A stretch of DNA of 63,081 nucleotides, filler included, from Octopus bimaculoides (taxonomy: Eukaryota): the NCBI RefSeq assembly GCF_001194135.2. It is 5 parts of 4 records of this genome, joined end to end, with 100 filler letters (N's around TTAATTAATTAA, not from the genome) between each part and the next. Parts side by side here need not be neighbours in the genome. Positions count along the whole stretch, not along the records: positions 29,973 to 42,235 come from NC_068983.1; 4 more parts are not named here. One strand, 5' to 3'. Under the pieces are notes generated by a model. The model ran no database searches, was not told the DNA's origin, and was given only the letters and a program-made list of their open reading frames with translations. Positions 31,679 through 34,157 of this stretch are shown here, one piece after another. Made by a program: the position numbers and the translations under genes. Each line of letters starts with the position of its first letter. The stretch's first letter is position 1.

Positions 31679-31817
31679 GTACTTGATGCCATCGTTGTTG
31701 TTGTGTCTTTTACACTGGATATTGTCTTCTCCTTTGTTGATGTTGCCCAAGCAGCCAAAGATGCCGCTGGTTTGATGGTTATGTTAAGATTATGGCGCAT
31801 CACTCGAATTATCAATG
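31679..31817 (+). CDS. HVCN1: Voltage-gated proton channel (Hv1-like), S3-S4 exon: [46 protein letters not shown](G)
   Basis: Acceptor tctcttctgcttcttcag, donor AATG|GTATGT, phase 0 to 1. The S4 RxWRxxRxxN signature and both S3 aspartates align with human Hv1 ILDAVVVVVSFILDIV...LRLWRVARIING. Which molluscan Hv paralogue this is cannot be decided here. Confidence 0.93.
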
Positions 31818-32169
31818 GTATGTAACATAAATACAAAAATAAAAAGGTGCTTGATAGAAAGTTTAAAGTTTCATAATATTTATACTGCAATCTAAAACAT
31901 GCATCTAAAGTTCAAATCCTTTAAGTTTCATCAAATAATTGTTGAAAATAATTTGTTATAAATACCATGATCACAAGAAAGGTATAAATACCACTACAAC
32001 TTGGTTACCCACATTCTTGAGGTTTCATGCTTAATTTAAACTAAAATTTAGCTTAAATTAAGTTAGCTAAATGTTAAGAAAATGTAAAGCCATATATGAA
32101 AGGATATTGTCCTTTTAAGTATGGTTTTATATATTTCTAATAAAACTAAAGTGTACAACTCTAATCCTA

Positions 32170-32760
32170 CCCAGAGTAGATCACTTACAATCAATGCTTT
32201 CAATGCCATCACCAACTGGCAGGAATTAAACCACTTCTGCACCATCTGAAGATGACCATCAGAAAGCTGAAGGATATCTTCATCACACACTTTGTTGTCC
32301 CAGACATAACAAAGCCTTCAAATATGTTAAACATCGAAACCTCTCAGCTTTAGTTTTCTTAGTTTCTTCCAGTTATCTCTCATTTATTCAATCTAAAGTT
32401 TTCCTTCAGAATATTATAGTGTGCTTTGCTCTCTCTCTCTCTCTCTCCAACCCACAGAGTATCAACTCCAGAATACCACAAGGTTCAATAATGTTTCCCC
32501 ACATTCTTCATTCTATATTTCTGACTTGTTCACTATTAGTTCCCTAATAAAACACACTCCTACACAAATAGTACCAACCTCCATTTATACTTAACTACTT
32601 TATGCATATCTACATTCAACCTCAATATTTTATGCCAGATTTGCATTGCTTCCAAGACCAGTTCCCCAGTGAGAACATATCAACTTAGTCTTGTTAAACA
32701 TCACCAATCCACAATCTTGACACATATCAAAGATACAGTCTTACACTGCAACCTCCTTAT
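32170..32760 (+). mobile_element. Decayed CR1/L2 reverse transcriptase fragment
   Basis: Frame-shifted DITKAFKYVKH (DxxKAFDxVxH-like) and RIPQGSIMFP (GVPQGSxLxP-like). Confidence 0.55.
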
Positions 32761-33059
32761 ATGTAAATACACAGTTGAAACCTTTAAAATAATTATAAAC
32801 ACTGAACCTCACATTTTTTAACAACTCCCCATGGTGACTTCACATGTGATGATGGCACTTTTCCATCTTCAGAGATCATGAAGAAGAGTGGAAAACCCTT
32901 AAGTGGCCACCTAAACTGATCCATGAATGACAGGCTCTGGTACACTTAAGGCAAATGTGCAGGTTTTTGTTAGACAAATATCATGACAATGACTTTCTTT
33001 CTTCAGCATTTCTCATTTGCTGTAGTTATTCTCGCCTACTCAAAATTGTCTGCAATGGT

Positions 33060-33144
33060 CTGGGCAAGTGTCTTCTACTATAGTCTCAGGCTGACCAAAG
33101 CCTTGTGAGTGGATTTGGTAGATGGAAACTGAAAGAAGCCCGTC

Positions 33145-33184
<40 letters not shown>

Positions 33185-33400
33185 NNNNNNNNNNNNNNNN
33201 NNNNNNNNNNNNNNNNNNNNNNNNNNNNNNNNNNNNNNNNNNNNNNNNNNNNNNNNNNNNNNNNNNNNNNNNNNNNNNNNNNNNNNNNNNNNNNNNNNNN
33301 NNNNNNNTTACAAAGAATAAGTCCTGAGGTCAATTTGCTCGACTAAAGGCGGTGCTCCAGCATGGCCGCAGTCAAATGACTGAAACATGTAAAAGAGTAA
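33060..33400 (+). mobile_element. Abundant SINE with internal (TA)n/(TG)n block, gapped
   Basis: GGGCAAGTGTCTTCTACTATAG...GGATTTGGTAGATGGAAACTGAAAGAAGCCCGTCG...GGCGGTGCTCCAGCATGGCCGCAGTCAAATGACTGAAAC. Same family as 44831-45242. Confidence 0.85.
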
Positions 33401-34041
33401 TAAAAAATGAAGAATTAATTGTCATTAAATTGTTGTAAACTTATAAAAGCTAACTAAATTCCCTGGTCTTAATTACAAAATCAACTCAAAAAGAAAAGTG
33501 GTTTGAACAGAAAAATCAAAATTAGTAGACATAAGGTTTATATTTTATACGTTTATTCATTTTCTCTTTGTTCTTGTGATGGTTAGAGTCTTCAGGCACC
33601 TCCTCCATAGAGTTCTATCAGAATAAACTGTCATTAGATTTTCTGGCTGGATTTCTAACTGTGACCAACTGAGACTATGGATATAATAATCAACCATCAT
33701 GTTTTTGGTCTACCCTTAGGTTTCCAGCTGGTTGGCTCAGCTTAAAGAATCCATCTTGTGATTCTTTCCTGCAACATTTTAATCACACATCCATAGTACC
33801 AGAGCTGTGACTTCTTAATGCAGAGAAGTATCAGCTCGACTTAGAAACAGGGTGCATAACTGAAAGGTCAGGGAGTCTTTCTAAGTCTATTTATGTCTGA
33901 TAATTTTGTAATATTTTGTGATATTCCTAACACTTTTAAATCTAGATTTAGTGTGGGGTTTTTTTGTTTCTTTTTGTTTTGTTATACATTCTCTTGGACA
34001 AAAATTTACCAAGGCCCAAATGTTCAAATATTTCTTCACAG

Positions 34042-34157
34042 GTGTGATCATTTCAGTACAAATGGAAGCAGAAAAGAAGATTCATAAAGTAGAAAAATTA
34101 TTACATGCTGCCGAGAATGAGAATGAGTATTTACGAGAAGAAATCACCAAATTAAAG
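34042..34157 (+). CDS. HVCN1: Hv1-like channel, post-S4 coiled-coil exon: (G)VIISVQMEAEKKIHKVEKLLHAAENENEYLREEITKLK
   Basis: Acceptor tttcttcacag, donor AAG|GTAAGG. The phase-1 start completes G of RIING. It parallels human GIIISVKTRSE... and has heptad-like composition. Confidence 0.9.

Follow-up and report, generated by a model that had tools for sequence, protein, structure and literature searches.

Exons of LOC106880339 in Octopus bimaculoides probably encode part of an Hv proton channel of the molluscan AcHv2/HtHv1 type

Do two exon-like segments in the genome of Octopus bimaculoides belong to a voltage-gated proton (Hv) channel, and does the absence of histidine from the linker between S3 and S4 set that channel apart? 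An initial annotation of a window of 63,081 nucleotides, the whole stretch of DNA that was analyzed here, had proposed as much for positions 31,679 to 34,157 and suggested an uncharacterized cephalopod paralogue with reduced Zn2+ sensitivity. We examined the piece of the window that holds these segments (29,973 to 42,235, from NC_068983.1). From the sequence comparisons described below, we consider it highly probable that this piece carries three exons of LOC106880339 and that the gene encodes an Hv proton channel of the mollusc-specific AcHv2/HtHv1 type. LOC106880339 is listed in RefSeq as an "uncharacterized protein" of O. bimaculoides with isoforms of 656-683 aa, and it spans ~121 kb (10001-131069 of its locus in GCA_001194135.2).

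Exon A (31679..31817, + strand) is 139 nt long, has an open frame and is bounded by the acceptor ...TTCAG/G and the donor AATG/GTATGT, the slash marking the splice junction. It encodes V232-N277 and the first base of the codon for G278 of LOC106880339, covering S3, the S3-S4 linker and S4, and its product is 100% identical to residues 232-278 of the RefSeq protein (P0003). Exon B (34042..34157, + strand) is 116 nt long, with ...CACAG/G as its acceptor and AAG/GTAAGG as its donor. It provides the last two bases of G278 and then V279-K316, where the end of S4 runs directly into a C-terminal coiled coil. The two exons join into one open frame of 85 residues with the Gly codon split 1+2, and their other two frames contain many stops. 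The intron between them (31818..34041, + strand) is of phase 1 and 2224 nt as assembled, with repeat-element fragments and an assembly gap inside. The proposal of two phase-compatible exons is therefore borne out by canonical splice sites, by the in-frame join and by RefSeq octopus proteins with exactly this junction. It had also been stated that the ORF track misses the S4 exon. This is plausible, since the sole ORF over exon A (31703-31825) has 40 aa and the usual cut-off is 60 aa; exon B lies within an ORF of 85 aa.

A third exon, absent from the initial annotation, was located by tblastn and a 6-mer scan. Exon C (39530..39620, + strand; splice sites AACAG/G and ATGG/GTGAGT) encodes E317-M346 (EELESVRKKQKKDDGKSIESVSQKTDDDLM) and one further base; within it, the coiled coil ends after two more heptads and a long cytoplasmic tail begins. 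The intron ahead of it (34158..39529, + strand) is of phase 0 and 5372 nt as assembled, with a second gap at 35473-35572. Isoforms X1-X3 split right after exon C, the next residue being D in X1, G in X2 and A in X3. Since the codons for all three of these residues begin with G, the split codon at the end of exon C fits each isoform. Exons A, B and C are the only exons of LOC106880339 within the examined piece, and they are consecutive, internal and coding. An older RefSeq model, XP_014785706.1, reads through the exon B donor (…KLKVRKYE-stop), in agreement with gtaaggaaatatgagtaa at 34158.

The gap between exons A and B (33185..33307, 123 N) starts 1367 nt past exon A, ends 734 nt ahead of exon B and directly follows a (TA)19.5 microsatellite at 33146-33184. 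Because the gap is intronic, frame continuity across it is irrelevant. The gap is expected to hide no coding sequence, as the ...RIIN/G exon directly adjoins the G/VI.SV exon in Aplysia and Pecten and RefSeq octopus proteins contain the same A-B junction. The microsatellite at the start of the gap lies at the end of a repeat-element copy. When the flanks of the gap were aligned to the other copy of the repeat (30859-30963), the left flank matched and the right did not, so that the missing length is not estimable from the repeat. At the end of the piece, an exact duplication of 199 nt spans a third gap. The ORFs upstream of exon A look mariner-like by our reading of the sequence, with no Pfam matches there, and neither a tRNA scan nor an Rfam scan of the piece gave a match.

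We considered the possibility that exons A and B are from different loci joined artificially across the gap, or that they belong to a decaying pseudogene copy. The gap between them, the second one in the next intron and the exact duplication across the third do indicate an imperfect assembly. However, the two exons are joined identically in the older scaffold-level model and in the newer chromosome-level ones, and the order, sizes and phases of the exons are the same as in Aplysia and Pecten. In all three molluscs, the boundaries follow the scheme cag/V[LF]DA...RIIN/G, then G/VI.SV plus 38 codons, then a phase-0 exon; the intron orthologous to the A-B intron is ~3.9 kb in Aplysia and ~1.35 kb in Pecten. 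Moreover, the frame is free of stops and frameshifts, splicing signals are canonical, and the 85 residues are 56-65% identical to the mollusc orthologues. We thus regard an artefact or a pseudogene as extremely unlikely and treat the exons as parts of one gene.

The identity of the product was examined by homology searches. A word-indexed search with the 85 aa gave two fragments only, and an exhaustive HMMER search of 1.8 billion proteins was used for homologues. The peptide was 100% identical to residues 232-316 of XP_052822498.1 (E = 3.4e-43), a sequence match that is far beyond chance, and 264 homologues were found at E <= 1e-3. Of the relatives that carry names, the nearest are "voltage-gated hydrogen channel 1(-like)" proteins from Haliotis, Argopecten, Physella and others, along with Aplysia LOC101850633. 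Against the PDB, the peptide matched mouse Hv1 at 1.3e-12, human Hv1 at 2.2e-12 and Ci-VSP at 0.07. The corresponding values for the full voltage-sensing domain were 5.3e-24 for human Hv1, 4e-22 for mouse Hv1, 2.7e-5 for Ci-VSP and 8e-4 for TPTE2. We take these matches to solved Hv1 structures to be already decisive for an Hv assignment at the sequence level; comparing folds would not tell Hv apart from VSP or TMEM266. Pfam returned for the 85-aa peptide only a sub-threshold FlaC_arch match at the coiled coil, the fragment being too short for Ion_trans; the full 656-aa protein passes Ion_trans, the match covering only profile positions 32-107 of 241. The best matches being Hv channels, the earlier assignment to the Hv type over a voltage-sensing phosphatase (VSP) or other voltage-sensor protein holds.

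The residues expected of such a channel could be placed individually by alignment to the mammalian structures 5oqk and 3wkv. The S3 helix core (31685..31720, + strand; HMMER) begins with D234 (31685-31687) and ends with D245 (31718-31720), which correspond to human D174 and D185. The S4 signature RLWRITR (31787..31807, + strand) contains R268, W270, R271 and R274; IIN277 and G come next, and human R205-R211 is its counterpart in the alignment. It has the RxWRxxR form, with at least two basic residues around the Trp, that PMC10911540 uses as a criterion. Both S3 with its two Asp and the S4 signature are as initially described. In S1, encoded outside the piece, D57, E64 and D68 of the RefSeq model align with human D112, E119 and D123 (phmmer), and S2, likewise encoded elsewhere, has the Zn2+-site residue H200. 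The selectivity Asp of S1 (D57) and the S2 His, which had been singled out for inspection, are accordingly present in this model. There are four hydrophobic segments in the RefSeq protein (~47-73, 198-220, 232-250 and 263-283), with only S3 and S4 encoded within the piece. No S5-S6 pore domain was found in this protein, whose tail is hydrophilic with a hydropathy peak of 0.44.

Beyond S4, the heptad a/d register Q-A-I-V-L-A-N-L-I-L in exon B is unbroken from the S4 helix. The coiled coil extends for about six heptads over exons B and C, with hydrophobic residues or Ala at 11/16 of the a/d positions and Asn at one "a" position. The same pattern is kept in 20 members of the clade described below, and its register agrees with that of the GCN4 zipper in the 3wkv chimera. 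The coiled coil proposed after S4 was therefore found as a heptad-repeat helix that continues into exon C. In the cytoplasmic tail of the 656-aa protein, which is hydrophilic and rich in Ser, Pro and Thr, no phosphatase or other Pfam domain was detected.

A voltage-sensor protein need not be a proton channel, and the gene might instead encode a non-conducting sensor like TMEM266/HVRP1 or a VSP. The PDB search does detect the voltage-sensing domains of VSP and TPTE2 as similar, and the long C-terminal tail of the octopus protein could in principle hold another activity. However, the Hv1 structures outperform VSP by 17-19 orders of magnitude. RxWRxxR with its Trp is there, as are an Asp at the selectivity position of S1 and a coiled coil that adjoins S4, the tail has no Pfam domain and a composition rich in Ser, Pro and Thr, and the characterized Aplysia protein of the same clade is proton-selective. 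We judge a non-channel identity very unlikely, and the evidence favors a proton channel.

The position of this channel among its relatives was examined with a neighbor-joining tree of 118 voltage-sensor segments. The octopus protein fell in a mollusc-only clade with an Aplysia protein (P0166) and with scallop, abalone and snail orthologues. This is a simple distance tree of ~125 residues without support values, and the reference sequences of AcHv1, AcHv3 and HtHv1 were not included. With these limits, the phylogeny proposed earlier places the protein with molluscan Hv channels. P0166, the product of Aplysia LOC101850633, has 339 aa and 14 His in an S1-S2 loop counted here as 75 residues; it is taken to be AcHv2, because species, length and loop His count match those in PMC10911540. 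The membership of HtHv1 in the same clade is inferred from matching spacings of its published residue numbers.

We next turn to the linker that gave rise to the suggestion of altered Zn2+ sensitivity. The S3-S4 linker (31730..31771, + strand; S249-G262) consists of 14 residues without His, and V253 (31742-31744) occupies the position of human His193 and of Val254 in HtHv1. The distance from the S2 His to the linker Val is 53 residues in every clade member checked, the same as in published HtHv1 (H201, V254). Octopus falls in a 22-residue class of S3-to-S4 spacing, 3 residues above the 19 of vertebrate Hv1. In the AcHv2/HtHv1-type clade, this segment has the form SFVxVxxAAxDAAG. A linker His is absent from 98 of 142 Hv homologues and from 30 of the 31 proteins in the 22-residue class. 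The His-free linker is thus real, but it does not distinguish the octopus protein. In HtHv1, Val254 replaces human His193; the channel is moderately sensitive to Zn2+, and several other non-mammalian Hv1 channels likewise lack this His (PMC5987876). Zn2+ acts more weakly on all three of AcHv1-3 and on HtHv1 than on mammalian Hv1 (for HtHv1, PMC5987876). By analogy with the AcHv channels and HtHv1, a weaker Zn2+ block of the octopus protein is plausible, as initially proposed, but it is neither new nor safely inferable from the linker. The S2 His, the two S1 acids and a loop of 124 residues with 21 His are all present in the full protein, so that its Zn2+ behavior cannot be read from the linker.

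That loop, the extracellular one between S1 and S2, also contains 23 Asp+Glu, and of the eight clade members measured, octopus ranks first in loop length, His count and acidic-residue count. The loops of six others have 67-93 residues and 11-19 His, and the count for Arion (30 residues, 3 His) looks shortened by the motif that marked the start of S2. Published S1-S2 loops are 79 residues with 14 His for AcHv2 (PMC10911540) and 73 residues for HtHv1; a long, His-rich loop that can be N-glycosylated characterizes the AcHv2/HtHv1 type. The tail of the octopus protein is ~340 aa, over half of the protein, and is alternatively spliced; an older annotation release made it a separate "unc-89-like" gene. 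Long tails (520-655 aa) also occur in other members of the clade. In addition, His228 is present in octopus, and this residue is lost in the heterobranch snail channels. Given the loop, His228 and the disordered, spliced tail, it is conceivable, if rather unlikely, that the octopus orthologue functions differently from other channels of the AcHv2/HtHv1 type. Its loop could then serve to sense metals or pH on the outside and so lead to higher Zn2+ or external-pH sensitivity despite the His-free linker, and the retained "throttle" His228 might give normal internal-pH sensitivity. A higher Zn2+ sensitivity through the loop is the opposite of what was first guessed.

The same features raise the possibility that the protein is derived from Hv channels but has shifted in its main role, for example to a channel of an intracellular compartment or a scaffold, with gating and Zn2+/pH pharmacology unlike those of AcHv2 and HtHv1 and dominated by the 21-His loop and the tail. 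Its loop is the largest in the clade sample, its tail exceeds half of the protein with isoforms diverging just after exon C, and a published review reports intracellular-localization motifs in several molluscan Hv channels. On the other hand, the core residues for gating and selectivity are all canonical, and long tails are found in other clade members too. AcHv2, which has a His-rich loop as well, reaches the plasma membrane and acts as a proton channel. A shift in role is therefore improbable in our view, and an Hv channel of the AcHv2/HtHv1 type remains the preferred reading.

We predict that the octopus protein is a proton-selective channel gated by voltage and the pH gradient. Its functional unit would be the four-helix voltage-sensing domain with no separate pore. 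As in the rest of the family, depolarization and the pH gradient would push S4 outward, so that a path selective for protons opens within the voltage-sensing domain; two subunits would be joined by the coiled coil into a cooperative dimer. Judging from AcHv2 and HtHv1, gating is expected to be fast and the activation range possibly negative. The Zn2+ block may be weaker than in mammals, because the site would consist of one His and two acids (E64, D68 and H200), human His193 being replaced by V253.

What had been described as an uncharacterized cephalopod paralogue is indeed a cephalopod Hv channel, but it is not undiscovered. The gene is in RefSeq as LOC106880339, and octopus genes similar to AcHv1-3 have been published, with four putative Hv channels in O. 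bimaculoides. The loss of the second Zn2+-binding His is documented for HtHv1 and most non-mammalian Hv channels (for HtHv1, PMC5987876). Little here is new in these respects, and we found no electrophysiology of the octopus protein in the literature. The practical value lies in annotation, as the "uncharacterized protein" can confidently be named an Hv channel of the AcHv2/HtHv1 type. Its cDNA would be a sensible choice for studies of cephalopod acid-base physiology or neuronal H+ currents. Interest centers on the His-rich loop, on His228 and on the tail, all encoded outside the piece, and not on the linker.

Among characterized channels, AcHv2 resembles the octopus protein in many respects. 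The two are 41% identical over 89% of the 321-aa region of voltage-sensing domain and coiled coil, and both have RxWRxxR, the S1 Asp, the S2 His, a long His-rich loop, a 22-residue His-free S3-S4 segment and a coiled coil. They also share exon boundaries and the clade in the distance tree. AcHv2 is proton-selective, and measurements on it gave a negative range of activation and an inward H+ current (PMC10911540). They differ in the loop (124 residues and 21 His in octopus versus 75 and 14 in AcHv2), in the additional alternatively spliced tail of ~340 aa in octopus and at the position of human His168, which is His228 in octopus but Gln in AcHv2. Because of these differences, the gating of the octopus channel need not resemble that of AcHv2. 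AcHv3-type unconventional Hv channels were considered and rejected: the S4 motif of AcHv3 is xPWRxxR (PMC10911540), with the first Arg missing and Pro before Trp, whereas RLWRITR of octopus has R1 and no such Pro.

HtHv1 of Helisoma trivolvis (PMC5987876, PMC5987877), compared here by its published residue numbers, is similar in its long S1-S2 linker, S2 His, Val at the His193 position and extensive coiled coil. Its Zn2+ site of one His and two acids is published, and that of octopus is probably alike. It has Gln229 at the "throttle" position, where octopus has His228, and with 360 aa it lacks the long tail.

Human and mouse Hv1 (HVCN1; 5oqk, 3wkv) share with the octopus protein a four-helix voltage-sensing domain without a pore and a coiled coil after S4. 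The octopus protein has the same residue at each of the positions of human D112, E119, D123, H140, E153, D174, D185, R205, W207, R208, R211 and N214. The S1-S2 loop, however, is 8 residues in mammals and 124 in octopus, and in their S3-S4 segment, 3 residues shorter than that of octopus, mammals have His193 as the second Zn2+ ligand, which octopus lacks. Mammals have one Hv gene per genome. Ci-VSP and TPTE2 have a homologous S1-S4 sensor of much weaker similarity, without the Trp-containing RxWRxxR and without a coiled coil after S4. A voltage-sensing phosphatase was rejected as a candidate, as the 656-aa octopus protein has no phosphatase domain and continues after S4 with a coiled coil instead.

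We examined the two exons that the initial annotation had read as part of an Hv1-type voltage-gated proton channel, in the part of the window that comes from NC_068983.1 (29,973-42,235, the piece). A polypyrimidine tract and CAG lead into exon A (31679-31817, + strand, 139 nt), and GTATGT comes directly after it; exon B (34042-34157, + strand, 116 nt) lies between ...TTCACAG and GTAAGG. A Gly codon is split at their join, with one base ending exon A and two opening exon B, and the phases are compatible. Joined, the exons form a single open frame of 85 residues; the remaining two frames are rich in stops. 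The sequence and its joined translation bore out the exon coordinates, the splice sites and the described order of two S3 Asp residues, a 14-residue linker without His, RLWRITR and IING, and a charged heptad-repeat helix. The remark that the ORF track misses the S4 exon was also explained, since exon A sits only in a 40-aa ORF (31703-31825), which a 60-aa ORF track would leave out.

The intron between these exons (31818-34041) contains an assembly gap, a run of Ns at 33185-33307, which lies 1367 nt 3' of exon A and 734 nt 5' of exon B. Because the gap is intronic, frame continuity across it is of no concern. It opens within a (TA)19.5 microsatellite that is the tail of a short interspersed repeat copy (33063-33184), from a family ending TA-rich or in (TA)n; a second copy (30859-30963) likewise ends TA-rich. 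The question of a hidden exon was addressed by comparison with orthologue gene structures and homologue alignments. At the orthologous loci of Aplysia (L001) and Pecten (L002), an exon of the form cag|V[FL]DA...RIIN|G is followed directly by G|VI.SV and exactly 38 codons, and the exon sizes and phases around the RIIN|G junction are equal in octopus, Aplysia and Pecten. The alignments of all homologues and human Hv1 showed no insertion at RIING-VIISV, and the RefSeq octopus proteins contain exactly the junction seen in the window.

When the 85-aa peptide was run against 1.84 billion representative proteins in an exhaustive HMMER search, 264 matches had E <= 1e-3. The top match (E = 3.4e-43) was 100% identical over all 85 residues to residues 232-316 of the 656-aa XP_052822498.1 (P0003), 'uncharacterized protein LOC106880339 isoform X3 [Octopus bimaculoides]'; isoform X1 is 683 aa long and isoform X2 667 aa, and the gene spans ~121 kb. 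XP_014785706.1, an older model of 321 aa, closes with ...KLKVRKYE and a stop, which is exactly what results from reading straight through the donor of exon B, gtaaggaaatatgagtaa at 34158 (34158-34175, +); the piece therefore belongs to the LOC106880339 locus. By tblastn and a 6-mer scan, the piece carries exactly three exons of this gene; those for S1, the loop and S2 are upstream of it and those for the long tail downstream. The third, exon C (39530-39620, +; EELESVRKKQKKDDGKSIESVSQKTDDDLM plus one base; acceptor AACAG|G, donor G|GTGAGT), which had gone unlisted, encodes the stretch where the coiled coil finishes and the cytoplasmic tail starts. Isoforms X1-X3 part ways immediately after exon C, so alternative splicing begins at its donor. 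In an older RefSeq release the C-terminal tail formed a gene of its own, LOC106872049, named in part 'muscle M-line assembly protein unc-89-like', which newer annotation merges with the channel part as LOC106880339. [quoted passage not shown] The gene is already in RefSeq, and the practical gain from this analysis is a better name for LOC106880339.

The remainder of the piece is intronic and repeat-rich. A retro-element integrase remnant (40618-41310, -) consists of two ORFs split by an in-frame stop, which when joined match Pfam rve at E = 9e-7 and 29.5 bits, under the 32.6-bit gathering score. Just 5' of exon A, frameshifted ORFs (31117-31600, +; …PYVWQQDFASCHTS…, …WPPFSSDCHTLDHYVWG…) look by eye like the C-terminal part of a decayed Tc1/mariner-type transposase, a putative reading; Pfam gave no match for them. 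At the end of the piece a 199-nt sequence occurs twice (41617-41815 and 42037-42235); the copies, 420 nt apart, are 100% identical, and a 10-N gap (42027-42036) sits just ahead of the second. This duplication most likely stems from faulty assembly and is not a real repeat. There is also an inverted pair of short interspersed repeats (30136-30189 / 34336-34389) and a second gap (35473-35572) flanked by (TAGAAA)n and (TA)n. Scans of the piece for tRNAs and Rfam families found no matches.

Searches of the PDB upheld the Hv identification, with Hv1 structures far ahead of Ci-VSP and TPTE2. The 85-aa peptide matched human Hv1 (5oqk) at 2.2e-12, a mouse Hv1 chimera (3wkv) at 1.3e-12 and Ci-VSP at 0.07; for the 321-aa voltage sensor and coiled coil the values were 5.3e-24 (5oqk), 4e-22 (3wkv), 2.7e-5 (Ci-VSP) and 8e-4 (TPTE2). 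In the alignment with human Hv1, S1 residues D57, E64 and D68 correspond to D112 (the selectivity filter), E119 and D123; H200, E213 and H228 of S2 and the S2-S3 turn to H140, E153 and H168; D234 and D245 of S3 to D174 and D185; and R268/W270/R271/R274 and N277 of S4 to R205/W207/R208/R211 and N214. The S1 selectivity Asp and the S2 His, flagged earlier for inspection, are thus present in the RefSeq protein as D57 and H200, in exons outside the piece. Four hydrophobic segments stood out in a hydropathy scan, all of them outside the Ser/Pro/Thr-rich tail. The Pfam Ion_trans match covers only the S2-S4 part of the profile, and the Pfam scan of the protein found no other domain. Starting in S4, the heptad register runs unbroken across exon B and on to the two opening heptads of exon C, with Q, A, I, V, L, A, N, L, I, L, L and V at the a/d positions; the pattern is kept in 20 clade members (see below) and its register matches the GCN4 zipper fused in 3wkv. 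All four sequence features used for Hv channels in the Aplysia study (PMC10911540), namely the S1 Asp, the S4 motif, four segments and the coiled coil, are therefore present, and the window itself contains two of them.

Among named proteins, the nearest come from abalone, scallops and snails, where they are called 'voltage-gated hydrogen channel 1(-like)', and from Aplysia (LOC101850633, P0166). The Aplysia protein is 339 residues long, and its S1-S2 loop contains 14 His; both figures match the published description of AcHv2 (PMC10911540). In a neighbour-joining tree built from 118 voltage-sensor segments, where the sampled outgroups were Hv1 of Elysia, oyster, fish, cnidarian and sponge, the octopus protein fell in a mollusc-only clade with LOC101850633. 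Common to the clade are a long S1-S2 loop rich in His and the exon structure described for Aplysia and Pecten, and the S3-to-S4 spacing of its members is 3 residues longer than in vertebrate Hv, with a linker of the form SFVxVxxAAxDAAG. Helisoma trivolvis HtHv1 (D107, E114, E118, 73-residue loop, H201, K228-Q229, V254; PMC5987876, PMC5987877) very probably belongs here too, judging from published residue numbers, because its spacings of 28 residues from the S2 His to the 'throttle' and 53 to the linker Val equal those of the clade. An AcHv3-type identity was ruled out, as the window codes RLWRITR and not xPWRxxR (PMC10911540).

Octopus, bivalve, vetigastropod and caenogastropod members have a His at the human His168 position (residue 228 of P0003; …LLKHKAE…), encoded by an upstream exon outside the piece. 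The sampled heterobranch snails, including the AcHv2 candidate of Aplysia, have Gln, as published for HtHv1. This position is the 'throttle', or internal-pH-sensing site, and His versus Gln here predicts a difference within the clade in internal-pH dependence or kinetics. The octopus S1-S2 loop (P0003 residues 73-196, outside the piece) has 124 residues, 21 His and 23 Asp+Glu, including the run HGHGEDHGHGGGHHGH, and among eight clade members measured it is the longest and has the highest number of His. Three features outside the window may reward experiment: the size of the loop, the His kept at position 228 and the alternatively spliced tail.

On its sequence, the octopus protein has a canonical Hv voltage-sensing domain whose S4 runs on into the coiled coil. 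By family knowledge, depolarisation and the pH gradient would push three S4 Arg outward, opening a proton path of water wire and Asp-Arg within the voltage-sensing domain, to which D57 would give H+ selectivity; the coiled coil would confer dimerization with cooperative gating. By homology with AcHv2 and HtHv1, we expect a fast-activating channel, perhaps with a negative activation range that permits inward H+ current.

The initial annotation had singled out the missing linker His and proposed reduced Zn2+ sensitivity. With the linker taken from the second S3 acid to the first S4 Arg, helix ends trimmed off, His is lacking in 98 of 142 Hv homologues and in 30 of the 31 proteins of the 22-residue class, and the weight placed on its absence is not justified; most linkers that do contain His follow the vertebrate pattern, ...F[QR]EH[EQ]FEALG. 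Among four tabulated Zn2+ ligands, HtHv1 has Val254 in place of the second His, and an acid replaces it in insect, Ciona, sea urchin, zebrafish and other Hv1; Zn2+ efficacy declines from 2 His + 2 acids through 1 His + 2 acids to 1 His + 3 acids (PMC5987876). Zn2+ inhibits all three Aplysia channels, less strongly than mammalian ones. Reduced sensitivity is thus reasonable by analogy with HtHv1 and AcHv1-3, but it repeats known family behaviour and overlooks the extracellular loop with its 21 His. In Emiliania Hv1 the Zn2+ site consists of S1-S2 linker His residues (PMC5987876), and the octopus loop, 124 residues with 21 His and 23 acidic, could bind metal. The putative Zn2+ site of the octopus protein, E64, D68, H200 and V253, has the configuration of HtHv1, whose gating shift takes ~10x more Zn2+ than that of human Hv1 (PMC5987876).
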